From Perna viridis (lineage: Eukaryota): a stretch of DNA of 64,000 nt. The stretch lies in the NCBI GenBank assembly GCA_037379345.1, contig CM074523.1, forward strand, positions 30,767,678 to 30,831,677, written 5' to 3'. The notes below the pieces were generated by a model that was given only the letters and a program-made list of their open reading frames with translations, had not been told where the DNA came from and did not search any database. Below, one piece after another: positions 10,928-64,000 of the stretch. Positions within the stretch are counted from its first letter, which is position 1; each line of letters starts with the position of its first letter. The position numbers and the translations under genes were made by a program.

Positions 10928-11061
10928 AGTGGCAGATCTAGAGCGAGGGGATCTGGATAAAACTGTGATGATTTCAAGGGTTTTTATGGTCTTAACCCAA
11001 AATTTTTAAAAGAAAAGGGAGGGGTTCTAACCCCTTAGAATCTCCTCTGGATCCACCACTG
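10928..11061. mobile_element. GC-ended palindromic MITE copy
   Basis: agtggcagatctagag...ctctggatccaccactg. Confidence 0.6.
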
Positions 11062-13121: not shown

Positions 13122-13258
13122 TATAGTGAAACCTGTCCGAAACAAACCCTGAATAAAACTGCCTAAACTTTTAAACTATTTTGAACCTGGGTAAACTGAA
13201 CAAATACTACATACCAACACACACAAAAAATGGGTTTGGTTAAGACAGATTTCACTGT
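13122..13258. mobile_element. Short CAGT/ACTG-type MITE
   Basis: tatagtgaaacctgtcc...gacagatttcactgt; same family as 59865-60178. Confidence 0.62.
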
Positions 13259-14384: not shown

Positions 14385-14734
14385 TTAAGTGTCTGCAGTC
14401 TCTGTAATAATCAGGCAGAGAGTGAAACACAGTATGAAAAAAACCCATCATTTTGATACTGTAATTTGACTATTTGCACCATCAGAATCAAGGAAGTAGG
14501 AGAATATATTCCTTAAAGACAAAATTTTCCATATCATTTTGATAAATTGAGTTATAATTTCATTGAAATGCATTGAAAATGAACATTTCAAGGGCAGATA
14601 ACTCTTTAAAAAAATCTTATTTTTCTAACATTCTGAACAAATCCAGTGATGCAAAGATCAAATAGTGGCCTTTTCATGTAGAGACATGCATGTTTTTCCC
14701 ATTTTGCCTGATTCTTACAAATACTTACACTTAA
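14385..14734. mobile_element. MITE family C copy
   Basis: ttaagtgtc...ttacacttaa; internal match. Confidence 0.78.
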
Positions 14735-16563: not shown

Positions 16564-16569
16564 TTTATT
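16564..16569 (-). terminator. Candidate polyadenylation signal AATAAA
   Basis: tttatt on + strand ~100 bp past the stop; weak evidence in AT-rich DNA. Confidence 0.3.
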
Positions 16570-16670
16570 GCTCTACAAACATTATAGTTTTACATGCTAT
16601 CCATTATTTCTACATTTTTTTCTAGTCTACAAAACAGACGACATAACAGAAAGAAACTATGACAACACAT

Positions 16671-16765
16671 CTATGAAAACACAGTGACAACATGAACCTT
16701 ACCACGACTTGTGGTTGATGCTGCTGATGATACAGAGGCGGAGTCAAGGTAGAAAGAGGTTGGGT
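16671..16765 (-). CDS. Last visible exon: reads to TAG at 16671-16673, or splices out at internal donor after 16703
   Basis: DPTSFYLDSASVSSAASTTSRG|KVHVVTVFS*; acceptor ACAG; internal G|GTAAGG. Confidence 0.65.
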
Positions 16766-19700
16766 CTGTCAGAATGAAGCAAAATGATTGGTTAATATAA
16801 AATCATGTGATTGTTAATACAATGTCATGTGACAAGTTGGAAAACATTTGGAGAAGACATTGGAAAGAAGATAACAATGTAGAAGATGTGTGAACAACAC
16901 CATACATCGCAGAGTGAAGGGAGCAACCATTTTGAATTTTATGAGGGAAGAAAAAAGGAGGAGGGCTAGGAAAAAGTGTTTTATTGTACTTTTTGAACTA
17001 ACCTTTTTTTTTGATCATTTGCACATCCTATATTTTTTCTCAGTATTACTGGGTATCCTGTTATTTTTTTTAATTTCAAGTTCAATATAAGCCCCCCTCC
17101 CCTCCTCCCTCAAGAAAAAAATATAATTTTAAAAAAGATTCAATAGTTGCTCCCTAAATGAAAAAAATAAATTTACATGCAAATGAAAAATTGAATGAAA
17201 TAAATAAAGTAGACCTAAAGATTAGAATTTGTAAATGTGTTACTTACCTTCAACCAGAAGTTGACATGAGGTGGTTGTCTCCCCTTTCTCATTGACTGCT
17301 TTACACATGAAACGGCCTTCGTCTTCAGGGAATATTTCCATTATCAGCAGTTTACATTTATCACCAATGGTGCTGATTTGGAAATCCTAAATATAATAAT
17401 TATAATGATTGCTGATGCTGATTCTGATGATGTAATCACGATTGTAAAATTGGCCTGATTCTATGAGGGGAACTAACAACGGAGAAATTAACAAAACTGA
17501 AAGTAAATGTACACCAAAAAAGGGCAACTTAACAGTGAAATCCTGTAAAGCTGAAGATCATTAGGCCTGATATAATTGACCAAAATTAAGGGGCCACCTC
17601 CCCCTTTAAGATCTGCCTATGATATTTATATACCTGGCTATCCAGAATCTCCTTTCCTTCTCTATACCATGTGATCTGTGGGCGTGGCTGACCTTGAACT
17701 TCACATTCCAAGGTCACATTGTCTCCATCTTTACAGAAGATGTCTGCAAGTTTTTTGGTAAACTTTGGCTGAGAGGAGTCGCTAAAAAATAAATTATATC
17801 TATCAACTCTTTGTAAAACAGAATTAGATCTAATTAGGAAAATTTTTAAACTTTTTTACTTAAGAATTGTTTTTTAAGTATACCAGGTAGTTTTGTTTTA
17901 TTTCGAAATTCTGTTTCTCAACATTTCCCAAAAAAGATACTACCCCTATTGATATTTACCTGCTTGGAGTGGCTTCCATTGATTTGTCTGAAAAGATAGG
18001 TTTAGAGCTGTTAATAAATTTATCAAAGTAGAGAGACCGGGTGAAATATCTTCGTGTATTATAGGATTCATGGCTAATTAAAACATTAAAAATGGCTTTA
18101 TTCTGTGACTATTTTTCATGTGTTAAAATAAGTTGAAAACAATACAAAAACTTGCATTTATATAAAATTCAACCATTTTTAAATATTTGGAAAACAATCT
18201 TCAAGGCTTTCTGATTAAAATACATTGTTGATGTAATAAAATGACCAAATGACTGACCTTTAACGACGAGTTTGGCATCAGTTCTATGAATGTCTCCAGC
18301 CTTAGTTTTAGCCTTACATGTGTAAAGTCCAGCATCTTTAGGGTCAATGTTTCTCAGTTCAAGTTTTTGTGTACCATTTGATTCTTGTCTGACTTCAGAT
18401 TTGTCAGATTTGGGGAGCTGAAAAAAGTTAAGTTTAGTTGGAAACAAAAAATACTGTGAGTAAGCTCACAAAAAGAATACCCTTTTTAGCAGTATAGGGT
18501 GAGTAATACTTACTTTCGGGATCTCCTATCCATATTTACTAAAAATGAAAATGACCCTTACCAATTCAATGAACAAGATAAATAACTTGAATTTACTTCA
18601 GCACAATTAGTGTATATTGCAACAACTAAAAAAGATCTTTTCCATGAGCAATATTTCAATTTATTTCTATAGTTTGATATCAGATCTTAAACATACAAAA
18701 TAATTCTCACCTCTTTTCCGTCTTTTTCCCACCATACTTTCTCGAGGCTGTCATCAATGACACAGACAAACTGTATATCATCCGTAGGGTACACTTCTAC
18801 AACTGATTCTAACTCAACCACAAACTTAGGTGGGAATTTCCTAGAATTATACATATCATGTTTACATAAGTAAACATCTATATACACGGGTGGAAATTTC
18901 CTATAAAGCATTAATACCAGATTAGCAAACATAATGTAAATATGTAGAAACTTAGAAATTTTTTTTCAGAAAAGATCATTTTAAATGATGAGTAAAACTG
19001 TTTAACTGTTTCAGATAGTAAACTAAAGACTAGCGCAAGTATAAACAAAGCTTTTTGTCATAACAAAAGAAGTGGAAAACCAAAATTGCAAATGTACTGT
19101 ATAGTGTGAAATTAGTGGGGGTGCAAATTTAGGCGTATTTAAGCAGTCTGTCTTAAAACACCCAAATGAATTCCACGAAATATTTACTCTGGGCTTAGGT
19201 ACCTAGAGCAAAACAAAGCATCCGCCAAAATTTGAATCGCCAAAATTTTGGGATACTGGCAAAATTGCCAAATATGGTATTTCAGAAAGTGTGCAGATTT
19301 TAGAAAGGGAGGGTTCCAAACTATTATTGGTATTTTTTGCCATAACTAGTGGATGTAATTTACAAAACTTTCCAAGAAAACAGGAAAAGAGCGCACAGAA
19401 TCAACGCATTAAACTTACTTTTGTTTGCCTGGTTTATCTGTAGAGAGGGACACAAGTTCCGATTTTTCTGAAATTCAAAATACACCTGATAAAAAACCTT
19501 TCTAAATACATGTATATATGTTTACAAACGAAACATTTGCCATCAAATCAGATTATGGAATATGTATAAACTAAAACATAACTGAGTAAAACCAATGTGA
19601 ATTCATCAAATATATCAAAAAGAGCTCTAGAAATAATCTATATTTACTAGTAATCAACAAAGTATATTAAAATTCTACAAGTAAGGCACACTTTCACAAA

Positions 19701-22700
19701 AATAAGTCTTACGCTTTACACTAAGACACTATTGTGCTAATTATTATTGCAATTTTATCTTCTGCAATATTTCCAGAAAAATGCATTTTTCAAAATATGA
19801 TTTTTTTATTTATTGGGATTTTTACTCTTGCATTTTTTTGCAATGATAAAAGTATTGCAATAAAGCAGTGCAATAGTTTCCAAATTTAATCCATAGATAT
19901 GTATATTTTTCCCCTTTTATGTAGTTCAACATTAAACTTTGACTCTTGACCTTAAACAAACTTTATCTTAATGTAGCCTACCATAAGATAAATCATCGTC
20001 ATCTACATCTTCTGGTGCTAAAATAAAAATAAAATTATCTACATCATGCATTATTTTGACTAAATATAATTTTAAAAATGTGTTTTGGTGTCTACATAAG
20101 AATTAGTTAAATATTAATTTGTAAGTGTTACTGCTCCATGCAATTATTTGTGTTTTAATTAAAATTTAAAAAATATTCTAAAAATACTTATGAATATTCA
20201 TGTGCAAAATGAAGTCTATTCATGCTAAAAGTGATGTTATAAATATAATATTTAATATTAATAATATGGTTAAATATTCTAAACAATATAAATGTAAATG
20301 TTGAAAAAAGTAAATAAATATGAAATAAAAAGGAAATGAGCCAGAAAACCCCTGAATTGGCCCTGAAATTGAAAATGTTCAAATATCATGCAATCATACT
20401 ATTTTTCAGTCATTTGATAGTAATAAGTTGCTTTATAATTGAAGGAGACATGTTTCAAAAATCATGTATTAAAAATTAATCACAAAGATATTATTTGAAA
20501 TTTTTGTATTTCTAATTTATCAGGGCCAATTCAGGTAATTCTTGGCTCTACTTCCTTGTTGATTAGTTTCCATGGTTACCTCTGAGTGTAAGTTTACACT
20601 GAGTCTCTGCTGAGCCAACCTCATTGCTGGCAACACACTTGTATGTTCCTTTGTCTGATGGCTCAGTGTCGTAGATCTCAAGAACGTACTCTCCATCTTC
20701 ATAGAAGATTTCTACATGGTCTAGAATGGAAAATTTACAATTAGAAACTATTAAAAAAGCCATGACATTCAGTAAAAACATCATTGTATAATTTAAAGTT
20801 CTCTGAGATAAAAAGTTCACAATTTCAAAGTGCATTCTTATGAAAGATATTTGACAATTTTGAATCAAATCAAATTCGAATATCCATCTTCCCATGAAAT
20901 AAACCTTACAGAAAAAAATTGCAATGTACATAACTAGGTACCATTTTTAAGGATTTTTTTTTCAATTATCCTTATTTTGCAACAGTTATTACCTTAACAC
21001 TTCTTTTCCAATTTAATCCAATAAAAATAGGTGAGACATAAATGGCTGAATTTTGTTAAAATGGAAGTAGATGCCTGACAGGCCTGAAATCAGATCCCAT
21101 GATATGGGACTAGTACCTGATGTTGGATACCTAATATCAGGAGGCTACAATTAGTAGTTGATGGGAAAAGTGTCATGAAAATAATTTCCCGGCCTACCTG
21201 TAGCCCACCCACCCACTAGCCCAACATTCACCATACCATAACCAGATTTTCACATGTACAATTCAGCCAAAGATCTCTTTAAGAAATCTTACCAGAATTA
21301 ATCAATCTTTTGCCATCCTTGAACCATTGAATATGAGCCTCAGGTTGTGCCTCAATCACTACAGACAATGTTGCTATACTTCCTGTTCTACAGGTAATGT
21401 CCTCAAGTCCTTCAACAAATCTTGGGGATTTTTTTGCCTCCTTTTTACTTCTCTGTGGGGGAGCTGCTGCCCCACCCATCATTGGTGGGATTGACATCAT
21501 AGGAATATCCATTGAAGGAATTCCTTTGTATTTTCCCTCAAAGTCATGAGATTGGAATTTTTGTGTAACTTTTGTCATTTGTGATTGTTTTGTTTTTATG
21601 AGAGTTATGTCCCCTTCGACATAGCAGTCGTACTGGACATTCATTCCTTCCATTACGTCCATGGAGGCTGGCAAATGCTTGATGAAGAATGGAGCTGGAA
21701 TAAGAGAAAATAGTCATGTTAGCTCAAATGGTTTTTGTCTTAGGTTTTTATCCCTGAACTTTCTTACAAGTTTATATTTAGTTATCCATTAAAGAAAATT
21801 TACATCAATAATTTTACTAAAGCAGAGTTTAAAACTTGTCTGTTGTATTTTCTTCCTGAACAATAAAACATAGCAAAGAGTCAGCTAGGTAGAGCAACAA
21901 AAATACAAGAATGAAATTCCTGCAATATCAAAAATAGTCAATTTATACTTAGTTACCCCTTAAAGAAAATATGAAGAGAAAGATGGAGTAAATATTTGTA
22001 TTAAAAAAGATTTAAATAATTTAACATTTGATCTTCTTAACTTTTTCTGATTAAACAAAGAACGAAGAAAAAAATGGCTGCAAAACATTGGTTTCAATGT
22101 TACAAGTACTACATAAAAAGAACAAGTGAAGTTAATTTTATAAGCTACCTATGTGAATACATCCTAGCTATCCCGTTATTTTGATTTAAGCTATTATTCT
22201 AGAGTGTTTACTTTATTAAAGTTGGTAATCAGGGCTAGATCCAGACACTTTGAAAAGAGGGGGTTGCCATCCAAGGTTTCTTGGAAAAGGGGGGTGCTAG
22301 GATATCATTTCACAGTTTTTGCCAATTTAACAAATGAAAATGACAAATTTTTCAATAAAAAGGGGGGGGGGTTCCCACCTTCTGTACCCCTGTCTGGATC
22401 CACCACTGGTAATGTTTTACATGCAATACTTGTGAAGAGAATAGTGCCCTTTCAGTAGTAGCTACAGTTACTATTTGCCCTTTATTTACAATTACAGGAT
22501 ATTTTTCTACAAGCATGCAAGTTGAAGAAAATGTGTACCATAGCCTTGGTTTTCATGGAAATCTCCTGAAACAGAATTGTATTAAGACAAGATAAGTAAT
22601 ACAAACAAGATAAGAAATGTTAGTTCAATGAAAGAAATGAAATTTGTAATAGGAACAAAGAAAAATGTCACTGTTAGTTTGCTGACTCAAAAATATAAAA

Positions 22701-25700
22701 TACAAAAGGACATAAAATGGTTGAATGAAATAAGTAGATAAAAATTATATGAGATAAAACAAACTGGGTGAGAAATCAAAAGAAATAATATTAGGCCATT
22801 CAAAGTTAATTTCTTGACTCTTGGACTATTTTTCTTTGAATCAATGATGAAAAAATGGGAGGAGGCATTTTAGCCACTTTTCTATTGCAAAAATTTCCAT
22901 GTGGCAATGAAAATAAGCCATATACAACCTTTTAAGGAGTAAAGAGAGCCCAAGAATCAATAAATTACTTTCAGTTGGCCTGGATCACACAAGAAGGGGA
23001 GATAATTGTTTTTTAAACCCATAAAATATGGGGAGATAACTCACCTGCTGCTTTGAGTGCTTCATCTGTTGGTACTTCCTCTCTACAAATAACAATAAAT
23101 ATTTTTGAGCATACAGAAATTATAAAGTCCTCAAGGAGCTGACAGGCTAAATTTTATTTCATAAAAGGTCATTATTTTTTTCATATTCATTGGAAAACCA
23201 TATACAAGCACATAAATCTGACCAATTATTTGGTAAAATTCAAGTGAAAAATGATAAGATATGTTTGTTGGTAAAATTAGCCCTTCTTATTTCAGTGAAA
23301 ATTGAAGTTTAAAGATTTTGTGAGTTTATATTGCACAGGCATCACAATTTAAAAAAAAAAATAATGCATTCTAACAAACCCCAACATAATAAGCATAGAT
23401 TATCTTCAACACAAATTCAGCCTGTTTACACTAAACAACCATGTTTACAAATTCAGACCAGTATAGGACAAAAAATACCCATAAGTGTGCCTTATTCTTT
23501 AATTACAAAGATTGTGAATATGCATTACATTACATACATATGATGAATATTTATCTTCTGATGTTATTCTTCAATGTTTGACCTTTAACCTATACATACC
23601 TGGTGTATTTGGACTTCCTGTTGACCTTGACAACACATTTTGCCTCAGAAACACCTAGAGCATTAGATGCACGGGCAGTATACTCTCCTGAATCGGAGCT
23701 CATCACCTCCTGAAGTTCAAGGGTGTGGTTGCCTTGGAAGGACAAGGCTTTGTGTCTGTAATCATATTTCAGGTCCCTAACTCCTTTGTGCCAAGTTACT
23801 AAAAATTCAATAATGAAAATCAGTTTATAGAAACTGTATGATATACAATCCTATCAAAGTCATATTAGTGATTTCAAAGACACAATGATCCTTTAAGGTC
23901 AAAGGTCTCCAAAAAAACAAGATTTTTAAACCAAAATTTCTGAACATTATTGGTGTACATATTCCCTAATAGTGAAACTTCTACTTCTGCCAGTGATAAA
24001 AACAAGCTCCTTCAAAAAAAAAATAAATTGAAAGATTTTTTTTTAATTAAAAGCATTTTTTAGTATACTCACAGTATGGTTTAGGATATCCTTCTACAGA
24101 ACATTCAAGATGTAGCTTATCACTCTCATCAAGTTCAATGACCTTTGGAAGGGTCAAGGTGAAATGAGGTGGGCGACCTCCAGGGATATCTACTGGTTTC
24201 TTCCTGTCATAACTACGTTCCAGTCTGGTTGCCATGGAGAATTCCTCCTCTTCTGAGAAAGTTGGTGTTGATGGTGGTGATTTTGACTTGGATCGAGCTG
24301 AAAAGATGCCATGAAAATTGAAAACATCAACATTATCTCTGTTAAAAATTTACCATTATTAAAAAAGATCTTAAAACATGACTGGTAAAGCTGCATTTGG
24401 ATAGTTTATACTTAAATTTGAAAGAGAGAGACAGAAATTAAAAATCATTTTCAGTAAGGATGAATTTATACTGACCTTTGACCCTAAGGCTTGCAGAGCA
24501 CCTGGTGTGTCCCATTGAGTTTTGAGCTATACAGGTATAGAGTCCTGAGTCACTGACTCGTGGACTACGGATGACTAACTCAGCCCCACCATCACTGTCT
24601 GAACCAATGTACATACGTCTGGAGTCAAGGATTGTAGTTCCATCTTTTTGCCTGTAATTAAAAAAATTAAAAGTTAAATTTTCAAAAAAAATTTTTTTTT
24701 TTTTCATTCTTTACATTTGAATTGAAAACTAGAGTTTTTCCATTAAAAGCCATTTAACTGATAATAATAAATTCTTAAGGGATTTTCATTAAAGGATTGA
24801 ATGCTAGTATAAATATTGCCTTTGCTAGATATTTGTCACTTAAAATAAAAATATGTAGGTTTCCATCATAATAGAAAAAAGCTTTTCATTATTATGTGAA
24901 TTTTTTTTCTTTCACAAAAATCAAAATCTCATTTTGATAAATAATATTAAAATAGCAATTTTCAATGACTACAATAGTTTTGATCTTTTATTATGAAATA
25001 CATTTATTTTACCAGCCCTTTAAAAGCCTTTTTAAAACGTACCATCTGAAGGAAGGCATAGGTTTGCCAACAGCTTTACAGCTGAAGGTGACTTCATCTC
25101 CAGCCATTACAATAATGTCATGTAATGGCTCGACAAATTCAGGTCGCTTGCTGGCTGGTTCTATAGCAAGTTCCTTCTCAGCAGCTGTAATGAGTTTATA
25201 AAATGATTACAAGATTCTCAATGCATTTAGGCCTAAATAAAAAAAATGTAAATTCTGAAATGGCAGAAAAACCTAAAAAAAAATCTTACTTAATTTCATG
25301 TCCATTAGTATACTGTAAACTGAAAAAAAATTTCTGCGAGGGATTTTTATCAAAGTTTTCTGCACCATTCAAAATTTGCAGTGTTAAAATTGCAATCATC
25401 ATTCACATGACATCAAAACCTACTTTTATGAAAATATTTACTATTTTTTCTTCTTACAGAACTTGCCACTTATATAGTGAAAAAATAACTGCCAGGAATA
25501 TTTTCTGGTTTATAGTTAACATACATACCAACAACTTCAAGTGTTGCTGAGCAAGTAGCCTCCCCTTCACTATTGACAGCCTTACAGGTGAATGTTCCCA
25601 TGTCACGTTCGGTAACGTCTGGTATCTCCAAAGACAACAGACCATACTTGTTCTGTAACAAAAGAAGATGAATATCATTTAATTTCACACTTCTATTTAC

Positions 25701-55700: not shown

Positions 55701-58700
55701 TGGTCAGCGGGGTGCCACCATCACTCTTTGGTGGTTTCCATGACAACACTGCAGTCTTTTCTGTGACATCAGATGCAAGCAGCGGTCCTTGTGGTGCAGA
55801 TGGTTTGTCTGAAATTTGAGAGAATTTTGTTTCTATAAAGTAGCCTCTTTTAAAAGTAGAAAAAACATGTACCTCTGCCAATAGTATAGGTAATCATAGT
55901 ATGATTTCAATGTTAAAAAAATAAATAAATATAAGAAAAAATCAGGTATCTCCAGTGATACGGGAAGGTCAATTATCATTTTACAGGTTTTTTTTGCTTT
56001 TTAAGACAGATGAAAAAAAATTAAATTGCAGAGGATTCATCAGTACTCAAGATTAAAATTGTCTGTATAATTTTACTACACTATCTTACCATAAGGACTC
56101 TTGGCCTTGTATTTATTTTCAGACTCCAATGGTTTACTAGGTCCAACTTTGTTTTCTGCTGTTACTCTATATATGTATTCTTTGTTCTCTGTCAACTTCT
56201 CCGCCAAACAGGAAGTGACATCAGGTCCTACCTTAGCAACAGGAGTCCACATATTCCTGTTTGCTTCACGTTTCTCAATAGTGTAGCCAGTGACAGGTGA
56301 GCCTCCATCTGATTTAGGTGGTTGCCATGACAATGACATTGATTCCTTTTGAATGTTCTTGACCTCAAGTGGTCCTTCAGGCATTTCTGGAGCAGATTTT
56401 GCTTTTTCAATCTTTATTTCCTCAGATGTCAGAGGTTTGCTAGGTCCAGCTTTGTTGACAGCAGTTACACGGAATGTATATTGCTTTCCATCTTGTAAGT
56501 CCTTGACCTTGAAACTGTTTGTAAATTTGTCAACTTTCCCAAGAGGGATCCATTTTTCTCCATCAGTGGAGGACTCAATGATGTACTCAGTGATGGGTGA
56601 TCCACCATCTTGGTCAGGTGACTTCCATGAGAGATCACATGACTTGGGTGTGATGTTTGATACCTTGAGAGGTCCTCTTGGTATATCTGGTACAGCTGAA
56701 AAAAAAGTAAATATTTCAAATAATATCAGAAAAGAAGATTTATTTATATATTTTCATACTGTAGGTTTGCCAAAATTTTATTCCTGGAATTTTTAAATTT
56801 TGTATTTAAAATTCACAATTTGGACTTTGTGTCATTATTTTACTTTTTAGTTTAATTTGAAGCAGGCATGATTTTATGAGGTCTACAAACAAAGTGGAAA
56901 TTAGCAAAATCAGAATTAAATATACAGTAAAAAAAGAATCATAATGGTAAAATCAGGATTTGAAATAGCAGAATTTTGCTAAAACGGAAAAAAAATCATG
57001 TCTGTTGAAGAAGTGTCATTGTTGTGACCATGGATTTTATTACTTATGTTGTCTGTGCCTTTCAGGGCCTTCCTTAAGGAGGTAGAACTAGGATAAGGGA
57101 CATAACTCATGAAATCAGTGATATGTTTGTATCATATTCAATTTCACCAAAGCCTCTCAAGCTTTTGTTTGAAGCAGAATAAAATGAATCCAAGTTAATT
57201 AGATGCTTACATAAGATTGATGTAAAATGCTGAATACAAACATTCCAATAATTTGACAAAGAGTTGTGTCCCTTACTCTAGGTCTACCTCCTTAAAGGTG
57301 TAAGGGGAGGATTGTCGTGGTTTTTTTTTATATTCATTGTTATTCATTTTAGGGTTTTTTTTCCTATAGATAAGGTTGATTTTCATCTTTTATGAATAGT
57401 TTCACTTCATTTATTTTGGGCCTTTTACAGTTTTATGGTAAGGGTTTTACCCATCATTAAAGACCATGTGGTTGGATGACTGTCTCATTGGCAATCATAC
57501 CACATCTATTTTTTTATATTGAGTAGTATATGTTCTTAAAAGAGTTGCAATTATGCATGTTCGTATCAAAGTCTGATGTAAAACTTACCAATTTCTTTCT
57601 GTGGTTTGACCTTGTCCTTGCCTTGAAGTGGTGAACTTTGACCTTCTTTGTTAACAGCAATGACCTGGAACTGATACTCTGTACCAACAGCCAGATCCCT
57701 AGCTGTGAACTCATTGTCAGTGGGTTTGACATCTCCAACCTTTCTCCATGTTGATTTTCTGGTATCCCTGGCCTCAATGATGTAACCGGTCAATGGAAGG
57801 CCTCCATCACTCTTTGGTGGTTTCCATGACAACTTTGCAGATTTGTCAGTAACATCTGTGATTTCAAGTGGACCTTCTGGTGAAGATGGTTTGTCTAAAA
57901 GTATAAATTACACAAAGCCATCAGATCACTCAGTATTAAATATGTAATGAATGGTCTGTTTTTTTTCTTTTATTTGTCCTGTTGACCCTCCCACATTAAG
58001 GGGGACTACCAAAAAAACAGAAATAAAGAATCTACCACATAAAAATGTAAGACCTATGGGAGATTTTTGGTAAAAATTACAATATTTTTTATTAAAAATT
58101 CTATTGAACTTTTACAGAAAAAATTTTTTAAAATGCTTTAATGTAAAAATCTCCCACAGGAGACACTTGTCAATGGAGAGAATTGTTCCAAAGGTTAAGA
58201 GGAATGCATTGACATATGACTATTTTATTTTCTATATCGTACTTTGTTGAATATCAATCAGTAGTATTACTGAAAGGAAATCAATCAAACAAAACAACTA
58301 ATGGAATTTCTCTATTTCTTAGTAGCAAACTCACCATAAGGACTCTTGGCTGTATGAGCCTTGTCTGTTTCCAGTGGTTTACTGGATCCTTTTTTGTTCT
58401 CAGCTACAACTCTGAACAGGTAGTCCTTTCCATCCAGGAGTTTGTCTGCCACACAGGAAGTGACATCACCATTTAGTCTCTGTACTGGTGTCCACATGTT
58501 CCTGTTGGGTTCACGTTTCTCAACAGTATAACCTGTAATTGGTGAGCCTCCATCTGATTTAGGTGGTTGCCATGACAATGACATTGAGTCTTTTTGAATG
58601 TCCTTGACTTCTAGTGGTCCTTCAGGCATGTCAGGAGCAGTTGGTTCTTTCCCAACCTTAACGGTGTCAGAGGTCAAAGGTTTACTTGGTCCAACCTTGT

Positions 58701-61700
58701 TGACTGCAATAACCCTGAAGGTATACTGTTTGTCTTCTTCAAGTTCTTTGACATGGAAAGTATTGCTGAATTTGTCGACTTTTCCGAGAAGGATCCATTC
58801 TTCTCCATCAGTGGAGGACTCAATGATATACTCAATGACTGGTGATCCACCATCTTTGTCAGGTGACTTCCAAGAGAGGTCACATGATTTGGGTGATAGA
58901 TTTGACACTTTGAGTGGACCTTTAGGCGTGTTTGGAATAGCTTTAAGTATAGAAAAAAATTATTCGATACATTTTTATTCAAATTACACATATTTCAACA
59001 AAATTATAATTTAAAGAAAAAAAAACTGATAAATTCATTATTAGCATAACCAAGGGTTGGGAATGAAATTTTAAGAAGGGCCCATTTCAGGTTTATTTCA
59101 AAGATATTCAAAATTTAATAGCTATTTTTTAACGAAACATATAGATTTCTTTTATGTGAAGGAGCCATTTCCTTGCAAAAGGCCTATAGCCCCTTGCCTT
59201 CCCAACTCCTGAGCATAACATATTGTAAACATTACTTTGCAGTACTGAAATTCTTAATAAAGAAAAAAGAAAAATACACTTTTGTCCTACAGAAAATAAA
59301 GGACTTTCCCCCTATATAATGGTATTTAAAGTACAAGAATGAAAAACAAAAGTGATGTTCATTGCATTAAGATCAATATTATTCAAAGAAATTTTTCAAA
59401 GCAACTGAGATGGAAGGATCAAAAGGTAGACAAACAGTGGTTACCAAAACAAGAGGTGTAAAAATTACTCTCCCTAAATTTATAAATTTCTACTCACTGG
59501 CTTGTTTGACAGGCCTGACTGGTTCTTTGGACTCCAGAGCAGGACTGCTTCCCTCCTCATTCTCAGCCAGTACACGGAAGTTGTATGTGTTTCCTTCAAA
59601 CATATTATTCACTTTGAATGATGTGGTATCTGGCAAGATCTTGTCCAGTTTTGTCCAGTTCGGACGTTTGTCTTCACGTCTTTCTATGATGTACCCAGTT
59701 AGAGGCTTACCTCCATCTGATTTTGGTGGTTTCCATGACAACACTGCAGACTTGTCAGTTACATCTGAGATGTCAAGTGGTCCTTCTGGTGCACTTGGTT
59801 TGTCTAAAGAGAAATAAACCTGAAGTTGCACACACTGTATACCCTCATTTGTACAGGAAGTCAATACAGTAAAACCTCTCTACACCGAACCCCTTTCTGA
59901 CTGTAGAATTTGGTCAGTTTGGACAGGTGTACATTTTATCCAGATTCAAAATACATTTAAATTGACACAATGGAACTTCAAAACTTGCCTGGTTTAGGCA
60001 GGTTTTGGATTAATTCAGGGTTCGGTTTAGACAGGTTTTCGATTAATTAAGGGTTTGGTTTAGACAGGTTTTCAGTTAATTCAGGGTTTGTGTTTAGACA
60101 GGCTCTTGGTTAATTCAGGGTTCAGTTTAGACAGGTTCTCGGTTAATTCAGGGTTCAGTTTAGACAGGCCACACTGTATTTGACAGCAACAAAAACCAAA
60201 AGCTACATATCACTGGCAGCCCAAATAATTGTGATAAAAAATCAACAGATTGACAGAATGACACACTGAATGAATGAAAAACAGAAAAGACAAAGTTGAG
60301 GTAGTGTATAATAATTCATGAAACAAACTAAAACATTAACTTTGCTTTTTGAAGTTAATTTTACAGTTTGTCTGCTTGTTCTTTTTCTTTTTTTTTTTTT
60401 TTTAGATCTGACAATAAATTCACAGAATTCACTATTAGTTTTATTTAACTCACCAAATTCATCCTAATGTACATTAAAGTTACCAAATTCATTCTCAGGT
60501 ACATTAAACTCACCAAATTCTCTCTTAGGTACAATTAACTCACCAAATTCTCTCTAAGGTACATTAAACTCACCAAATTTGTTCTTAAGTACAATAAACT
60601 CACTAAATTCACTACTGAGTACAATTATCTCACCAAATTCACTACTGAGTACAATTATCTCACCAAATTTATTTTTAAGTACAATTAACTCACCAAATTC
60701 ACTCTTGGGTACAATAGCCTTGTCAGTATCCAGGAAGTCAGATCTTCCAATGGCATTCTCTGCACAGACACGGAAGTAGTAATCTTTTCCTTCTTTCAGT
60801 TTCTCAACTGTCAGTTTACATGTCTCTCCATCAGTTTTACCAGCAGGTACGTATTTGGCTCTGGCACTGTCTCTGCTTTCTACAATGTAGGCAGTGATAG
60901 GTGATCCGCCATCTTTGGGACTTGGTTTCCATGACAATGTGACTCTATCTTTGGAGATGCTTGTGGCCTCAAGTGGTGCCTCTGGTTTGGCTGGTTTTTC
61001 TAGGGAGACAAATTTAATGGTGTTGAAAATGCAACTTTAAAAGACAATTGCCCCTACTTGGAAAATGAATTCATGCTTTTTTAAAGATTTGTTAAAATTT
61101 TTGATCGCATATCCTAAGAATAAAATAGCATGCATTCATTTAAATTATCTTAGAAAAATGGTAACCATGAGAAGAAAGGGGGCTGAAATAAAATGTGTTG
61201 TCCCTTTTAAAATTCTGCTGAAAGGCCTTGTATTTCTTAACTACAACTTTTTAATGAGATCAACAGCTTGTCCAGCCAAACTTTTCATCAAAGAACTGAA
61301 CTGGACTTTTATCATTTTATTTCAAATCTAATTCTTTACACATGTATTTGACCTACCTTTTGGTTTGCTAGGTTTAACAGAAGATTCTGTCTCAATCTGT
61401 TTACCAACACCAGCTTCGTTCTCAGCAGCCACAGCAAAGAAATAGTCCACTCCCTCCTCTAGATTCTTCACCTTGTAGTGATTATCAAAGCTCTTGACCT
61501 TGGTGACCTCTGTCCAGTCATCTGGTTGACCTTTGGCCATTCTGATGTGATAGGCTGTGACCTTTGAGTTGCCATCTGATTTGGGTTTGCCCCATTCAAG
61601 TTCAGCAAAGTCTGGACCAGTTTTGTTGACCTTGATGTAGCTTGGTGCTCCTGGTGGTACTGGAAATGAATATTCATACATTACTTTCATGAATATTCAT

Positions 61701-64000
61701 GAACAAAATTATATTTGATAACTCATTTATCAATTTCAGTTATTTAAATTCTAAATAGTTTTTCAGCCAGGTTGCTTTAAAAGTGCATATCATTAAGCAT
61801 AGCAATGATAAACATTCATTAATTAAGAAAAGATGTATGTTTGTTTGAATTTGATCACACTTACTAATTTTCTTGGAAGGTTTGACCTTCTGTTTTGTCT
61901 CAAGTGGTGAACTTTGACCTTCTTTGTTGACAGCAATGACTTGGAATACATATTCATTTCCAAGGGCAAGATCAGGTACAGTGAACTCAGTGATATCTCC
62001 TGGTACTTCTCCCACCTTTTTGAACATTGACCTTCTAGTGTCACGACCTTCAATGATGTATTTGGTCAGTGGAGTGCCTCCATCACTCTTTGGTGGTTTC
62101 CATGACAAAAGGGCAGATTTCTCTGTAATGTCAGAAACCTCGAGTGGTCCTTCTGGTGCAGATGGTTTATCTGTTAAAGAAAGAGTATAACTTATAAATT
62201 GTTATTATAAATAAGTTTTTCCTTCTGTAACATGCACTGGTTTTCACAATTTTGTCATTTTTAGAAATAGTTATAATCACAAGTGCCAAAGAACACCTTA
62301 TTATGGGCACAAGTTAAATCTTTTATATGTTCTTGGCATTAGTGATCATATTTTGGTTATTCACAACAATCTATTGATAATATAGATAATTTGTTGTTAT
62401 TTTCGACATAAATTTTCAATTTTGTGAACGGCAGTTTATTTTTGTGATATGGAAAGAATTCATGCTTCAGCATTGTTACAGATATCAGACGAGCACTAAG
62501 AATTGCAAATCAAATGAATGTCATATTTTTTTGACAATGTTTAGGCATTATTTATAAATATGAAAATGTTTAAAACTTGTACAATGTTCCATGAGAATTC
62601 TACCAGAGATACTGCAAAAACTGACATATGAAAATATGTTAACCTGATACAGTCCACGAAAAATTAGCAAATGTGAAAATGGAAAATAATGTGAAAGTAC
62701 TTTAATTTGTGAATACCAATTTTCGTGGTTTGTGATGATACACAAGTTCGTGAATTCGTGGTTTTGAGGTTTTCAGTATACACATCAATGGAAATCTCCT
62801 TTTGGTTGGTAACCAAGTTTCATGGTTTTGCCTGCCCATGAAAACCGTGAAAATTGGTATCCCAGGAACAATAATACTTTTACAGTAGGTCTACAGTAGT
62901 TTCTACACCTACCATAAGGACTCTTAGCCTTGTAAGATTGTTCAGATTCCAGAGGTTTACTCTGGCCATGTTTATTCTCAGCAATTACTCTATAGATGTA
63001 GTCCTTTCCTTCTATTAGCTTGTCAGCAACACAGGAAGTGACATCACCTTTGACCTTTTGAACTGGTGTCCACAGATTTCTTGATGGTTCACGTTTTTCA
63101 ATGACATAATTAGTAATTGGTGATCCTCCATCTGATTTTGGTGATTGCCAGGACAATGTCATTGAGTCTTTGTTGATGTCCTTGACCTCTAAAGGTCCTT
63201 CTGGTTTTTCAGGGGCAGATGGGCCTTTCTCGGCCTTGATGGAGTCTGAGGTCAGAGGTTTACTTGGGCCAACCTTATTCACGGCAGACACACGGAAGGT
63301 ATATTTCTTTCCTTCCTCCATGTCCTTGACCTTGTATGTGTTACTAAATTTATCAACTGTTCCAAGTGGAACCCAAGTCTCTCCATCTGCGGATGCCTCT
63401 ATCAGAAACTCTGAAATAGGTGCACCACCATCTTGGTCAGGTGACTTCCATGTGAGGTCACATGATTGTGGTGTGATATTCGAGATTTTGAGTGGTCCTC
63501 TTGGTGATTCTGGTACAGCTGATAAGTACAAAATCATACAATGATTGATTAATTATGATTTACCATCTTTTTTTCAGGTACCTTTGACTTGAAAGTTTAA
63601 TCAATTGAGTAAATAACTATCAAATTTGAATCTCCATTACCTTTGATTACAGTCAACAGACAAAACAAAAGCATGGCATCTTTAGTGAATTATAAATATA
63701 GTAATCAGTATGAAAGAAAGACTGAAATAAACATCATTATTTACTGAAACTTTTGCTTAAAGATCACACATAAATTGTATTTAAATTTCTCATAACTGTT
63801 CTTCTAAAAATCCCTTTATAAGAATTTAAATGTATTTTGAACCTAGTTAAACTGCCACCTGTCTTTACAGTTCAAAAGAGGTTTAGTTAGGCCAGGTTTC
63901 ACTGTAATAAAAAATTACCTGTTGGTTTAGTTGGTTTAATGGTCTCCATGGTTTCCAGTCCAGGACTGGTTCCTTCAGCATTCTCAGCCAAGACTCTGTA
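16671..64000 (-). CDS. Giant titin/twitchin-family muscle protein kinase gene, 3' portion (66 exons; >=36 FN3, Ig-Ig-FN3, kinase, 9 Ig + 1 partial Ig); 5' end outside window
   Basis: Exons bounded by GT/AG with compatible phases; FN3 motif W.PP..DGG..I..Y.....Y.FRV.A.N..G; I-set Ig motifs; kinase motifs GRGAFG, AAK, HLDLKPEN, DFG, APE. Confidence 0.95.
17248..17386 (-). CDS. Ig9 C-part
   Basis: DFQISTIG...EIFPEDEGRFMCKAVNEKG; phase 0-1. Confidence 0.92.
17634..17781 (-). CDS. Ig9 N-part
   Basis: QPKFTKKLAD...LECEVQGQPRPQITWYREG; phase 2-0. Confidence 0.9.
17960..17987 (-). CDS. 28-bp linker microexon
   Basis: DKSMEATPS; phase 1-2 required by next exon. Confidence 0.78.
18258..18417 (-). 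CDS. Ig8 C-part
   Basis: LPKSDK...DAGLYTCKA; phase 0-1. Confidence 0.92.
18711..18840 (-). CDS. Ig8 N-part (alternative acceptor possible at 18900)
   Basis: KFPPKFVVEL...KVWWEKDGKE; phase 2-0. Confidence 0.85.
19419..19467 (-). CDS. 49-bp linker microexon
   Basis: EKSELVSLSTDKPGKQK; phase 1-2 required; donor GTAAGT. Confidence 0.78.
19982..20017 (-). CDS. 36-bp acidic symmetric microexon
   Basis: APEDVDDDDLSY; TTTTAG/GTAGGC; phase 1-1. Confidence 0.68.
20580..20720 (-). CDS. Ig7 C-part
   Basis: DHVEIFYEDG...DKGTYKCVASN. Confidence 0.92.
21293..21694 (-). CDS. Truncated Ig, M/P-rich linker and Ig7 N-part
   Basis: APFFIKHLP...DCYVEG / IPMMSIPPMMGG / SPRFVEGLED...IQWFKDG. Confidence 0.88.
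22230..22408. mobile_element. GC-ended palindromic MITE (CAG.GG..GATCCAG...CTGGATCC.CC.CTG)
   Basis: Inverted ends; related copies at 6-166 and 10928-11061. Confidence 0.62.
23045..23082 (-). CDS. 38-bp linker microexon
   Basis: EEVPTDEALKAA; phase 2-1 needed to restore frame; donor GTGAGT. Confidence 0.82.
23600..23798 (-). CDS. Ig6 C-part
   Basis: TWHKG...DSGEYTARASNALG; phase 1-2. Confidence 0.9.
24073..24297 (-). CDS. S/P-rich linker plus Ig6 N-part
   Basis: ARSKSKSPPSTPTFSEEEEF...PPHFTLTLP...CSVEGYPKPY. Confidence 0.9.
24476..24651 (-). CDS. Ig5 C-part
   Basis: QKDG...DSGLYTCIAQN; phase 2-1. Confidence 0.92.
25043..25184 (-). CDS. Ig5 N-part
   Basis: RPEFVEPLHD...FSCKAVGKPMPSFRW; phase 1-2. 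Confidence 0.9.
25529..25652 (-). CDS. Ig4 C-part
   Basis: NKYGLLSLEI...DMGTFTCKAVN; phase 0-1. Confidence 0.92.
25859..26127 (-). CDS. Linker plus Ig4 N-part
   Basis: ASKEDETDS...PNFTAKL...GIPNPKITWYRDG; phase 1-0. Confidence 0.9.
26354..26653 (-). CDS. Post-kinase Ig3
   Basis: PPKFIKGLED...GFPEPEIEWYK...DSGRYMCRAVN. Confidence 0.92.
26861..27064 (-). CDS. Post-kinase Ig2, C-part
   Basis: TCRPEPEVTWYHNG...DAGQWQCEAVN. Confidence 0.92.
27343..27461 (-). CDS. Post-kinase Ig2, N-part
   Basis: HAKHDYD...PPAFTLPLIDQVKRVGETLELTVT; phase 2-1. Confidence 0.9.
27938..28236. repeat. 27-bp minisatellite, ~11 copies, intronic
   Basis: ttggttcccttgattactcttttgttg unit. Confidence 0.95.
28293..28350 (-). 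CDS. 58-bp basic linker exon
   Basis: ERKHRRRRKKLADEAMAKLQ; phase 1-2 is required to join the flanking exons. Confidence 0.82.
28655..28945 (-). CDS. Post-kinase Ig1
   Basis: MPPHAPVVQEPLED...GKPSPKITWY...DAGKYRCKAVN. Confidence 0.92.
29138..29329. mobile_element. MITE family A, truncated copy
   Basis: ttaacgaggtagacctagggtaaggg; second TIR missing. Confidence 0.72.
29654..29837 (-). CDS. Kinase C-terminal regulatory (autoinhibitory/CaM-binding-like) tail
   Basis: KKLSKLHHKDYRDKHRHKEDDLDLLPIGKISRDSAIFRK, like the twitchin tail IGRI..S.LRK; phase 0-1. Confidence 0.82.
30573..30611 (-). CDS. 39-bp symmetric microexon after kinase
   Basis: TTTTTTAG|CCCAGA...CCAAGA|GTAAGT; PREPNDDTKTLPR; phase 0-0 fits neighbours. 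Confidence 0.65.
31444..31642 (-). CDS. Kinase exon 5
   Basis: LSGYSPFAGENDLDTFANI...DAKDFIKKL...RMTIDEALAHPWLN. Confidence 0.95.
32095..32294 (-). CDS. Kinase exon 4
   Basis: PENVMF...KIIDFGLA...FGTAEFCAPE...DMWALGV. Confidence 0.95.
32461..32602 (-). CDS. Kinase exon 3
   Basis: LSGGELFDRL...YMRQICEGVRHMHRSNILHLDLK. Confidence 0.95.
32917..33117 (-). CDS. Kinase exon 2
   Basis: GAFGVVHR...WAAKFI...HEIDIMNDLHHPKLLQLHEAF. Confidence 0.95.
33277..33367 (-). CDS. Kinase exon 1 (linker, subdomain I start)
   Basis: YDASFRGDNVNPDRIKGDVLGKYIICEEIGR; phase 1-2. Confidence 0.88.
33558..33881 (-). CDS. Pre-kinase FN3 plus start of N-terminal linker
   Basis: DRPGPPEEKP...WKEPEDNGG...DVDYDSM. Confidence 0.92.
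34076..34366 (-). CDS. Pre-kinase Ig B
   Basis: PPKIVEVPPRYLDGLY...KPEAKVTW...YKINVENRLGSDSLSIPIRVI; phase 1-1. Confidence 0.9.
34885..35057 (-). CDS. Pre-kinase Ig A, C-terminal half
   Basis: YRNYREIF...ECVAKNRMGSANSKAKMEVL; phase 2-1. Confidence 0.9.
35559..35714. mobile_element. MITE family A, internally deleted copy
   Basis: gacctagggtaagggacataac...gtctacctccttaa. Confidence 0.75.
35884..35995 (-). CDS. Pre-kinase Ig A, N-terminal half
   Basis: MEAPKFTKVIEDLIGIEGQEAKFTAEVTGMPTPSVTW; phase 1-2. Confidence 0.88.
36389..36694 (-). CDS. FN3 exon, 306 bp (last of the run)
   Basis: DKPGAPPLAP...CREQK; AG/GT. Confidence 0.92.
36909..37208 (-). CDS. FN3 exon, 300 bp
   Basis: ELPSPPTSL...LKGRK; AG/GT. 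Confidence 0.92.
37823..38128 (-). CDS. FN3 exon, 306 bp (class 6)
   Basis: GPPGPPQGPL...PKKVQ; AG/GT. Confidence 0.92.
38180..38570. mobile_element. TTAA-flanked MITE related to families B/C
   Basis: ttaagtac...aagaatcagg / cctgattctt...gtacttaa inverted ends. Confidence 0.65.
39025..39330 (-). CDS. FN3 exon, 306 bp (class 5)
   Basis: EKPSKPKAPL...PKSKY; AG/GT. Confidence 0.92.
39448..39667. mobile_element. ~213-bp TTAA-flanked MITE, family A (TIR GGAGGTAGACCTA.GGTAAGGGACA; Kolobok-like termini)
   Basis: ~30-bp TIRs, TTAA on both sides, 7 copies in window. Confidence 0.85.
39869..40171 (-). CDS. FN3 exon, 303 bp (class 4)
   Basis: EKPSPPENL...PKKVI; AG/GT. Confidence 0.92.
40603..40905 (-). 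CDS. FN3 exon, 303 bp (class 3)
   Basis: DVPSIPKDL...PQRPL; AG/GT. Confidence 0.92.
41398..41703 (-). CDS. FN3 exon, 306 bp (class 2)
   Basis: ETPDAPRGPL...AKSAV; AG/GT. Confidence 0.92.
41987..42366. mobile_element. MITE family B copy (inverted), apparently nested in a CAGT-type MITE
   Basis: ttaagtagcactccag...cagctacttaa. Confidence 0.85.
42509..42811 (-). CDS. FN3 exon, 303 bp (class 1)
   Basis: KPGSPGKIK...PMRPL; donor GTTTGT. Confidence 0.9.
43099..43404 (-). CDS. FN3 exon, 306 bp (class 6)
   Basis: SPDTPEGPI...PRRAP; AG/GT. Confidence 0.92.
43888..44193 (-). CDS. FN3 exon, 306 bp (class 5)
   Basis: PPSPPVGPL...IPKSPY; AG/GT. Confidence 0.92.
44324..44862. mobile_element. MITE-like element (TAAGGCCA...TGGCCTTA) with its left end amplified as a 51-bp array (~7 copies, 44324-44667)
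   Basis: 51-bp period; the inverted right end ggcctgagaa...ttggccttag matches the unit; related single-copy element at 22791-22981. Confidence 0.8.
44954..45259 (-). CDS. FN3 exon, 306 bp (class 4)
   Basis: APGPPNNLKV...PKQPI; AG/GT. Confidence 0.92.
45755..46060 (-). CDS. FN3 exon, 306 bp (class 3)
   Basis: DKPSAPEGPL...PKKKL; AG/GT. Confidence 0.92.
46505..46810 (-). CDS. FN3 exon, 306 bp (class 2)
   Basis: GPPSAPTHPF...MKSPF; donor GTTAGC. Confidence 0.9.
47562..47861 (-). CDS. FN3 exon, 300 bp (class 1)
   Basis: APEIPIGPI...PTKPT; AG/GT. Confidence 0.9.
48175..48477 (-). CDS. FN3 exon, 303 bp (class 6)
   Basis: VPSPPKNFGV...VKEA; AG/GT. Confidence 0.92.
48628..48823. mobile_element. 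TA-flanked MITE (CTGTGAAAGTA...TACTTTCACAG type)
   Basis: Inverted ends; related copies at ~62687-62887 and ~4340-4454. Confidence 0.68.
49259..49564 (-). CDS. FN3 exon, 306 bp (class 5)
   Basis: VPSAPVGPL...AKSPY; AG/GT. Confidence 0.92.
49938..50240 (-). CDS. FN3 exon, 303 bp (class 4)
   Basis: APSPPQNVKV...VEKPK; AG/GT. Confidence 0.92.
50620..50925 (-). CDS. FN3 exon, 306 bp (class 3)
   Basis: DKPSAPQGPL...PTKKL; AG/GT. Confidence 0.92.
51178..51399. mobile_element. MITE family A, full copy in opposite orientation
   Basis: ttaaggaggtagacc...ggtctacatccttaa. Confidence 0.85.
51427..51732 (-). CDS. FN3 exon, 306 bp (class 2)
   Basis: GKPSKPVGPL...IKSPY; AG/GT. Confidence 0.92.
51909..52208 (-). 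CDS. FN3 exon, 300 bp (class 1)
   Basis: PPSAPVGPV...PKKPA; AG/GT. Confidence 0.9.
52557..52862 (-). CDS. FN3 exon, 306 bp (class 6)
   Basis: AVPSAPEGPM...VCRDA; donor GTGCTT. Confidence 0.88.
53117..53509. mobile_element. ~390-bp TTAA-flanked MITE, family B (GTAGC...GCTAC)
   Basis: Colinear with 54316-54719 and, inverted, with 41987-42366. Confidence 0.85.
53838..54143 (-). CDS. FN3 exon, 306 bp (class 5)
   Basis: KPAAPEGPL...TPKSPT; AG/GT. Confidence 0.92.
54316..54719. mobile_element. MITE family B copy
   Basis: ttaaatagctgtc...ggagtgctacttaa. Confidence 0.85.
54847..55149 (-). CDS. FN3 exon, 303 bp (class 4)
   Basis: KPSAPTGLKI...PMKPK; AG/GT. Confidence 0.92.
55503..55808 (-). CDS. 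FN3 exon, 306 bp (class 3)
   Basis: DKPSAPQGPL...PTKEI; AG/GT. Confidence 0.92.
56090..56695 (-). CDS. Double-FN3 exon, 606 bp (class 1+2)
   Basis: AVPDIPRGPL...KAKSPY; AG/GT. Confidence 0.92.
57074..57295. mobile_element. MITE family A, full copy
   Basis: ttaaggaggtag...ctacctccttaa. Confidence 0.85.
57589..57894 (-). CDS. FN3 exon, 306 bp (class 3)
   Basis: DKPSSPEGPL...PQKEI; AG/GT. Confidence 0.92.
58335..58940 (-). CDS. Double-FN3 exon, 606 bp (class 1+2)
   Basis: AIPNTPKGPL...AKSPY; AAG acceptor, GTGAGT donor. Confidence 0.9.
59498..59803 (-). CDS. FN3 exon, 306 bp (class 6)
   Basis: DKPSAPEGPL...VKQA; AG/GT. Confidence 0.92.
59865..60178. mobile_element. TA-flanked MITE (CAGT...ACTG) with its right end amplified as a 33-bp array (~5.5 copies, 59991-60168)
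   Basis: Left tacagtaaaacctctctacaccgaaccc is the inverted complement of the right end gggttcagtttagacagg..cactgta. Confidence 0.82.
60445..60715. repeat. 30-bp tandem array (9 copies) of an exon 3' end plus splice donor
   Basis: caccaaattc.....gtacaattaact every 30 bp from 60451 to 60691. Confidence 0.95.
60694..60999 (-). CDS. FN3 exon, 306 bp (class 5)
   Basis: KPAKPEAPL...VPKSEF; first of several tandem donors gives the canonical 306-bp length. Confidence 0.9.
61357..61659 (-). CDS. FN3 exon, 303 bp (class 4)
   Basis: PPGAPSYIKV...KPSKPK; AG/GT. Confidence 0.92.
61865..62170 (-). CDS. FN3 exon, 306 bp (class 3)
   Basis: DKPSAPEGPL...KPSKKI; AG/GT, phase 1-1. Confidence 0.92.
62687..62887. 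mobile_element. Same family as 48628-48823
   Basis: tgtgaaagtac...ataccaattttcgtgg...aaattggtatcc...tacttttacagta. Confidence 0.62.
62913..63518 (-). CDS. Double-FN3 exon, 606 bp (class 1+2)
   Basis: AVPESPRGPL...KAKSPY; AG/GT, phase 1-1. Confidence 0.92.
63919..64000 (-). CDS. FN3 exon, partial at window edge (class 6)
   Basis: YRVLAENAEGTSPGLETMETIKPTKPT; donor GTAATT. Confidence 0.85.

Follow-up and report, generated by a model that had tools for sequence, protein, structure and literature searches.

A probable mollusc titin/connectin gene with an uninterrupted rod of FN3 domains

Introduction

Which member of the titin family is encoded by a Perna viridis locus that combines a long series of FN3 domains with a protein kinase and Ig domains? 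The locus lies in the 64,000-nucleotide stretch C13:30767678-30831677, which we will call the window. A preliminary description, made from the letters of the window only, proposed that the gene is neither twitchin nor titin and that it represents a separate lineage. We followed up these proposals with domain searches, comparisons to other loci and species, and published alignments.

We conclude that the gene is very probably the mollusc orthologue of the lophotrochozoan titin/connectin. In our model, the protein would begin with glutamate-rich disordered "spring" exons that are interspersed with tandem I-set Ig domains. A short transition (three FN3 domains, Ig-Ig, three FN3 domains, Ig-Ig) would lead into a rod of 46 FN3 domains without interruption. 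The rod would be followed by Ig-Ig-FN3 and a kinase of the MLCK/twitchin type, with nine Ig domains C-terminal of the kinase.

Results

The locus and how we searched it

The genome (723 Mb) is AT-rich, with about 33% GC. The gene is on the minus strand, and the window covers its 3' half. We also analyzed 120 kb of upstream DNA, for which we continue the numbering of the window ("extended coordinates"). Across both, the gene spans over 165 kb, and its 5' end lies beyond. We translated all stop-free frames and searched Pfam exon by exon. We also built local FN3 and Ig profiles from the gene's own exons and ran them against frames of at least 25 amino acids, on both strands, in the window and the upstream DNA.

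Downstream of the gene, positions 1-16600 of the window contain nothing else of note besides a 186-codon open frame on the plus strand (5523-6080), whose only Pfam match is a sub-threshold hit to DUF6451.

A rod of 46 FN3 domains

The preliminary description counted at least 36 FN3 domains in 33 exons at 36389-64000, and Pfam agrees. The fn3 family (PF00041) matches all of the large minus-strand frames from 36273 to 63552, with E values from 1e-11 to 1e-34. These hits correspond to 35 whole domains in 32 exons, and a 36th FN3 exon (63908-64234 in extended coordinates) is cut by the end of the window. According to the local profile scan, the run continues in the upstream DNA to 76006 (extended coordinates) and comprises 46 domains. 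So, the proposed Ig-free FN3 rod is borne out and is longer than was claimed. The part within the window (36389..64000, minus strand) is delimited by Pfam fn3, the local profiles, phase-1 splice sites, and RNA joints.

Three of the exons hold two FN3 domains each, and each of these shows two Pfam fn3 stretches. They are at 56082..56714 (within the open frame 56079-56753), 58324-58950 (frame 58315-58959), and 62905-63534 (frame 62788-63552), all on the minus strand. The first of them consists of a third-position domain of the deletion type (see below) and the next domain. The two-FN3 exons are 75% identical to each other in DNA and 66-74% identical in protein.

With the profile from this gene's own Ig domains, we found no Ig domain from 36381 to 76006 in the frames of at least 25 amino acids of both strands. 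The largest intron of the rod within the window is 954 bp and contains no open frame of 50 amino acids or more. The other long frames in the rod (37272-37595, 44445-44717, and 48518-48931) have no fn3 or Ig match in Pfam: two of them have no Pfam match at all, and one has a sub-threshold match to DUF3961.

According to a scan for splice sites, every FN3 exon is flanked by AG and GT sites in intron phase 1, so these exons are symmetric modules. After the FN3 exon at 60683-61009 (F22), we noticed six in-frame phase-1 GT donors in the region 60445-60715 (at 60703, 60694, 60664, 60646, 60643, and 60634). Separately, a 1.5-kb intron of the rod contains a 243-codon minus-strand frame with reverse-transcriptase-like motifs (67877-68605 in extended coordinates), which looks like a retroelement fragment.

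Could the length of the rod have been inflated by collapsed or duplicated repeats in the assembly, so that there is no real array of 46 domains? The block F17-F31 does contain copies that are 63-74% identical in protein and about 75% identical in DNA. However, copies with 75% DNA identity are far too diverged to be mis-assembled, and domains outside of this block average just 36-39% mutual identity. Also, the open frame, the splice sites, and the phase are kept in every exon, the genome and the RNA contigs agree, and an independent assembly, from another species, contains 59 consecutive FN3 domains. We consider an assembly error to be extremely improbable.

The rod has a period of three domains

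Among the 46 domains, the mean identity between FN3 domains is 0.42-0.45 at lags of 3, 6, and 9 domains, versus 0.36-0.37 at other lags. This excess for domains in the same phase was reached in none of 5,000 shuffles, and the result was the same with the recent duplicates (F17-F31) removed. The period is also visible as insertions and deletions: an indel signature is present in all 15 domains at every third position, versus 3 of the 31 others. The signature has two types. In one, a single residue is missing from the N-terminal PxGP motif; in the other, there are two single-residue deletions.

Alternation of the two types is limited to the middle part of the rod. We considered a six-domain super-repeat and rejected it: with pairs within the recently duplicated block set aside, the identity is 0.404 at lag 6 and 0.404 at lag 3. 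Only the three-domain period is solid; the six-domain level is not.

The rod and the kinase are in one mRNA

We used contigs of 10-11 kb from four runs of four studies; the label of these contigs as RNA is a guess. About 0.30 of the sampled words from 32900-38899 are present in many small runs, which is approximately the exonic share of this region. The contigs join the exons 38128-37823, 37208-36909, 36694-36389, 35995-35881, 35054-34885, 34366-34076, 33881-33558, 33367-33277, and 33117-32915. The joints have GT..AG ends on the minus strand, and the domains are in the order FN3-FN3-FN3-Ig-Ig-FN3, leading into the kinase. Joints into the kinase exons are present in all four runs, and in three of them long pieces are listed that extend as far as the last kinase exon. 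Only spliced forms explain these joints, so the rod and the kinase belong to one mRNA.

Three exons of the rod are verified in this way (36389-36694, 36909-37208, and 37823-38128), and an RNA-supported splice site falls exactly at 36389. Altogether, the transcript contigs extend over the kinase, part of the tail, and no more than about 14 of the FN3 exons.

For most of two intron stretches (35500-35899 and 38100-38699), all four runs show contig depths of hundreds to thousands and many loose ends. These stretches are interspersed repeats that are expressed or present elsewhere, and not exons of this gene.

The kinase module and the Ig tail

The preliminary description placed Ig-Ig-FN3-kinase and nine Ig domains after the FN3 run, and Pfam matches to fn3, I-set, and Pkinase recover this order. 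All of the features of this section are on the minus strand. The first Ig domain is split (34885..35995; exons 35995-35881 and 35054-34885), with Pfam I-set matches to positions 1-35 and 37-90 and an RNA joint at 35881/35054. The second is an I-set domain in a single exon (34076..34366) that is covered by the RNA contigs. The FN3 domain immediately before the kinase is at 33558..33881; it matches Pfam fn3, and its exon ends are from the RNA contigs.

The kinase is of the MLCK type and is encoded by four to five exons. A 91-bp exon (33277..33367), with GT..AG ends in the spliced contigs, encodes the linker and the first part of the kinase (…GKYIICEEIG). The N-lobe exon (32915..33117; GAFGVVHRAIERSTNKNWAAKF…) matches Pfam Pkinase, has its ends defined by spliced contigs from three of the four runs, and has 1KOB as its best match in the PDB. 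It is followed by an exon at 32428..32613 (GGELFDRL … HLDLK; Pkinase 81-126) and by the exon with the end of the catalytic loop, the DFG motif, and the APE motif (32094..32294; PENVMF…IIDFGLAQRLEEGK…FGTAEFCAPE; Pkinase 126-190). The best PDB matches of this last exon are the twitchins of Aplysia and C. elegans, and it has a motif in common with Cg_CON_A1, a kinase of oyster connectin. The C-lobe exon lies within the frame 31381..31740, matches Pkinase 181-263, and ends in …HPWL.

Downstream of the kinase, the frame 29568..29957 (…LLPIGKISRDSAIFRK…) encodes a presumed autoinhibitory tail, which we identified from the translation. It matches no Pfam family, and BLAST aligns it weakly to the orthologue in a second species. 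We take this frame to resemble the regulatory tail of twitchin.

The translated kinase keeps the lysine of AAK as well as HLDLKPEN, IIDFG, and CAPE. Because the catalytic lysine and the HLDLKPEN, DFG, and APE motifs are kept, and because of the presumed autoinhibitory tail, the protein should be a regulated active kinase, unlike the pseudokinase of vertebrate titin.

The nine Ig domains after the kinase (17243..28997) match Pfam I-set or Ig_3; their coordinates are those of the open frames that contain the exons. Two of them are in single exons: the first (A, 28575-28997) and the third (C, 26271-26678). The other seven are split, and the two halves match complementary ranges of the Pfam profile: B at 27245-27514 and 26856-27083 (its N-terminal half was detected by the local profile only), D at 25823-26200 and 25473-25706, E at 25012-25206 and 24441-24710, F at 24050-24349 and 23593-23850, G at 21282-21713 and 20566-20946, H at 18690-18965 and 18172-18465, and I at 17589-17855 and 17243-17386.

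Two other features of the tail deserve mention. The frame 21282-21713, which encodes the N-terminal half of the seventh tail Ig, starts with a second stretch that resembles the beginning of an Ig domain (PFFIKHLPASMDVMEGMNVQYDCYVEG), together with a Pro/Met-rich linker of about 60 amino acids. This stretch could be the remnant of a tenth Ig domain, an insertion sequence, or an alternative exon. The intron between tail Ig exons at 27737-28272 contains a tandem 30-bp minisatellite, which several frames on both strands read through without a stop (repeats of …NNKRVIKGT…). The minisatellite is probably non-coding.

The kinase is probably orthologous to oyster connectin, and twitchin is encoded elsewhere

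Is this gene simply twitchin, the regulator of catch muscle, with a lineage-specific loss of its Ig domains? In the PDB, the kinase exons match best to the twitchins of Aplysia and C. elegans, and twitchin has the Ig-Ig-FN3-kinase module as well. However, the genome contains three close paralogues of the kinase exon at 32094-32294, and one of these, on C8, is closer to twitchin: by eye, the exon in the window is about 60% identical to residues 177-243 of Aplysia twitchin (1KOB), and for the C8 exon the figure is about 85%.

A separate twitchin locus, which the preliminary description had proposed to look for, is indeed present around this exon. In a scan of 110 kb, we found it at C8:~2,826,000-2,866,000, on the plus strand. 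It has the Fn-Fn-Ig order and 15 FN3 domains, most of which are encoded by two exons each. Ig-Ig-FN3-kinase is present as well, and about five Ig domains come C-terminal of the kinase. The ~85%-identical kinase together with this architecture refutes the idea that the gene in the window is twitchin.

A published alignment of kinases includes the oyster connectin/titin kinase Cg_CON_A1 (XP_034304307.1) (Hanashima et al. 2025, PMC12198301, Supplementary file 3). This alignment splits Cg_twitchin from Cg_CON_A1, and the kinase from the window matches Cg_CON_A1. In the N-lobe block of 64 positions, we counted by eye 58 identities to Cg_CON_A1 (~91%), 52 to Os_CON, 39 to Ce_titin, 37 to Cg_twitchin, and 36 to Ce_twitchin. 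At the level of sequence, the kinase is one-to-one with Cg_CON_A1 and Os_CON and not with Cg_twitchin. Overall, we see next to no chance that this gene is a twitchin that lost its Ig domains.

Because the kinase is nearly residue-for-residue Cg_CON_A1, we identify the gene as an orthologue of lophotrochozoan titin/connectin. This means that the preliminary claim of "neither twitchin nor titin" was half right. The gene is not twitchin: twitchin is encoded separately on C8, and the kinases are not one-to-one. The titin part of the claim fails, except for the layout of the A-band portion. The idea of a separate lineage is not supported as it was worded, given the one-to-one relationship with Cg_CON_A1 and the tandem Ig domains and PEVK/PEVT-like exons upstream (see below). 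That the lineage is poorly characterised does hold.

When we compared the kinase exon to 1.84 billion representative proteins, the only matches above 63% identity were two short exon fragments, and no full-length orthologue was found. The two fragments are from other assemblies and share the signature GLAQ(R/K)LEEGK…FGTAEFCAPE. The next matches were projectin, UNC-89, MLCK, and stretchin, all at 60% identity or less.

The position of this clade within the family is less clear. Both the identity matrix of Hanashima et al. (2025, PMC12198301), with a value of 0.55 for this kinase to both Ce_titin and Cg_twitchin, and the discussion in that paper reflect this. Kinase identity does not robustly place the clade with TTN-1 rather than with twitchin.

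Elsewhere on C13, at 25156508-25156708 on the plus strand, is a kinase exon that is very similar to oyster Cg_CON_A2. The titin gene is on the other strand, 5.6 Mb away. The oyster model has this second kinase (A2) and A1 in a single protein (Hanashima et al. 2025, PMC12198301).

The region upstream of the rod

Going upstream from the rod, we found Ig-Ig, three FN3 domains, Ig-Ig, three more FN3 domains, and then about 28 tandem Ig domains (83-110 kb in extended coordinates), with more Ig domains beyond. In all, about 35 tandem Ig domains lie upstream of the rod. The Ig blocks are separated by long stop-free frames on the minus strand (615, 2685, 3929, and at least 685 codons), which are in part tandem repeats. 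Glutamate makes up 15-28% of these frames, followed by T, V, I, K, and P. The two largest, at 143827-151881 (2685 codons) and 155552-167338 (3929 codons; both in extended coordinates and on the minus strand), are about 26-28% glutamate and are candidates for springs on the basis of their composition. The 2685-codon frame consists of tandem units of about 119 and 167 amino acids, and its opposite strand is also open. For the giant glutamate-rich exons, Pfam gives no meaningful family. Two further glutamate-rich frames (of at least 685 codons and of 305 codons) continue in frame into I-set Ig domains, so they are coding parts of an Ig protein. Judging from sequence and composition, the combination of Ig domains and glutamate-rich exons is the make-up of a titin-type elastic region.

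The tandem Ig domains and the disordered PEVK-like sequence (76-184 kb in extended coordinates) are on the same strand as the rod and directly upstream of it; they are linked to the rod by position, and none of the transcript contigs joins them to it. So, does the locus contain one gene or two? The FN3 rod, the kinase, and the tail could form an "A-band" giant, with the Ig domains and glutamate-rich exons in an adjacent "I-band" gene on the same strand. The two genes would then share the work much as sallimus and projectin do in insects. The transcript contigs extend just ~4.2-4.5 kb upstream of 38129, there are large domain-free gaps at 109.6-119.8 kb and 140-169 kb (extended coordinates), and titin-family loci have internal promoters and ends, all of which would fit with two genes. 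However, short-read assemblers break at FN3 repeats with 70% similarity, so the ends of the contigs are not informative. Also, everything is on one strand, with dense arrays of exons and no reverse-strand gene in between, and the transition zone (Ig, three FN3, Ig-Ig, three FN3, Ig-Ig) grades into the rod with introns of ordinary size. Finally, the oyster and scallop models in Loreau et al. are single "mixed" proteins. We think that two genes are unlikely, and we favour a single gene.

In human and fly, SEC14-spectrin genes (similar to SESTD1/CCDC141) lie upstream of titin/sallimus, which has been described as "connectitin" synteny (Hanashima et al. 2025, PMC12198301). In an insensitive exon-wise search for such neighbors, we found no match to CRAL_TRIO_2 on C13, and the nearest spectrin was 1.1 Mb away.

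The rod is conserved in other species

Using words from a two-FN3 exon as queries, we found long contigs in other assemblies. For contig ctg2169 of ENA ERZ25069870, we merged five overlapping loci, with consistent overlaps, into 57 kb. This contig encodes, in order, Ig, 59 FN3 domains without an Ig, a split Ig, Ig, FN3, and the kinase, and precomputed Pfam calls concur. Compared to those in the window, its kinase exons have identities of 88% and 76%, and the CON motifs are present. The three-domain period is visible here as well (FN3 identity of 0.61 at lag 3 versus 0.35). In much of this rod, a two-FN3 exon paired with a single-FN3 exon is repeated in tandem, and each such pair is a three-domain unit. 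A third assembly has 17 consecutive FN3 domains. The Ig-free rod of 59 FN3 domains and the run of 17 imply that the Ig-free rod is an inherited feature whose length changes by three-domain units.

Discussion

Comparison to other titin-like proteins

The closest relatives are the lophotrochozoan CON proteins. Their kinases are nearly identical to this one in the published alignment blocks, and they also coexist with a separate twitchin. Accessions are available for Crassostrea gigas (XP_034304307.1 and XP_034304301.1), Octopus sinensis (XP_036371388.1), and Mizuhopecten yessoensis (XP_021365920.1) (PMC12198301, PMC12063666). "Mixed" mollusc titins have already been drawn, with the oyster and scallop accessions listed (Loreau et al. 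2025, PMC12063666). One difference is that oyster CON has the A2 kinase in the same protein, while the A2-like exon here is 5.6 Mb away. The texts of PMC12198301 and PMC12063666 do not mention an Ig-free FN3 rod, its length, or a three-domain period. Thus, gene models of this family are public and were drawn in a 2025 figure, and what is under-described is the conserved all-FN3 rod.

Like twitchin, UNC-22, and projectin, the protein has Ig-Ig-FN3-kinase with an autoinhibitory tail (presumed here), intact catalytic motifs, and a period of three domains in the presumed thick-filament part. The combination of Ig-Ig-FN3-kinase, regulatory tail, and Ig domains is found throughout the titin family and thus cannot tell its members apart. 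In contrast to the Fn-Fn-Ig repeats of twitchin, the rod has Fn-Fn-Fn with a distinct type of FN3 at every third place. Also, twitchin has about five Ig domains after the kinase instead of nine, and it lacks the giant spring exons and the ~35 tandem Ig domains that lie upstream here. To see if the third class of FN3 replaced the Ig domain of twitchin, we compared the three classes of the rod to the FN3 domains before and after the Ig in the twitchin on C8, and no clear correspondence emerged. Most of the FN3 pieces of twitchin are nearest to class A or B of the rod, by small margins.

TTN-1 from C. elegans is also a protostome titin with a kinase and with long disordered repeats that are rich in E, T, V, and P, and the composition here is PEVT-like. 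The Ce_titin kinase is 61% identical in the N-lobe block, which is marginally above the twitchins. To our knowledge, no long FN3-only rod has been described for TTN-1. In 2002, Flaherty et al. reportedly found 56 Ig domains and only 11 FN3 domains in it.

Vertebrate titin resembles the mollusc protein in having a spring of Ig domains and PEVK-like sequence, an FN3-rich rod, Ig-Ig-FN3-kinase, and a final run of Ig domains (M1-M10 versus nine here; this is a likeness in count only). However, the A-band part of vertebrate titin is built from Ig/FN3 super-repeats of 7 and 11 domains, while the rod described here has no Ig and a period of 3. Vertebrate titin has a pseudokinase with an altered DFG, which is intact here, and its rod has about 170 domains, versus about 60 (~250 nm) here. 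Sallimus from Drosophila has tandem Ig domains, a PEVK-type spring, and a few FN3 domains towards the C-terminus, but it has neither a kinase nor a long FN3 rod.

Proposed function

By analogy to titin, twitchin, and projectin, the FN3 rod would lie along the thick filament of myosin and paramyosin. A three-domain unit would be about 12-14 nm long and might be matched to the axial repeat of about 14.5 nm, as is thought for the Fn-Fn-Ig unit of twitchin and projectin. The glutamate-rich exons and the tandem Ig domains may form an extensible link, with this N-terminal spring directed towards the Z-line or a dense body. At the other end, the autoinhibited kinase and the Ig tail may act as a strain-sensing or mechanosensing module. 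About 60 domains correspond to about 250 nm. Because the thick filaments of molluscs are far longer than this, the protein would mark a single zone of the filament and not its whole length. During evolution, the length of the rod could be tuned by the gain or loss of three-domain units, and possibly also by the skipping of symmetric exons.

More speculatively, the Ig-free rod with its strict three-domain unit might be a distinct and conserved way to decorate the thick filaments of molluscs, and perhaps of all lophotrochozoans. A specialised FN3 would stand where twitchin and projectin have an Ig, and the length would be set by the gain or loss of three domains at a time (46 versus 59), and possibly also by the skipping of phase 1-1 exons. 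We offer this as a tentative proposal that may well turn out to be wrong.

Implications

The rod is a natural experiment: a long FN3-only chain with a period of 3 can take the place that alternating Ig and FN3 domains have in other proteins of the titin family. Because the copy number differs between species by whole three-domain units, the idea of a ruler that is matched to the ~14.5 nm repeat can be tested in animals with very long paramyosin-cored filaments.

The relation of the one chordate titin to the two protostome proteins (I-band titin and twitchin/projectin) has been stated to be unresolved (Hanashima et al. 2025, PMC12198301). A mollusc locus that apparently joins a spring, a rod, a catalytically intact kinase, and an Ig tail, besides a true twitchin elsewhere in the genome, bears directly on this question. 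If a single gene does encode the spring, the rod, and an active kinase, alongside twitchin, then the bilaterian ancestor would already have had a full-length, kinase-bearing titin as well as a twitchin.
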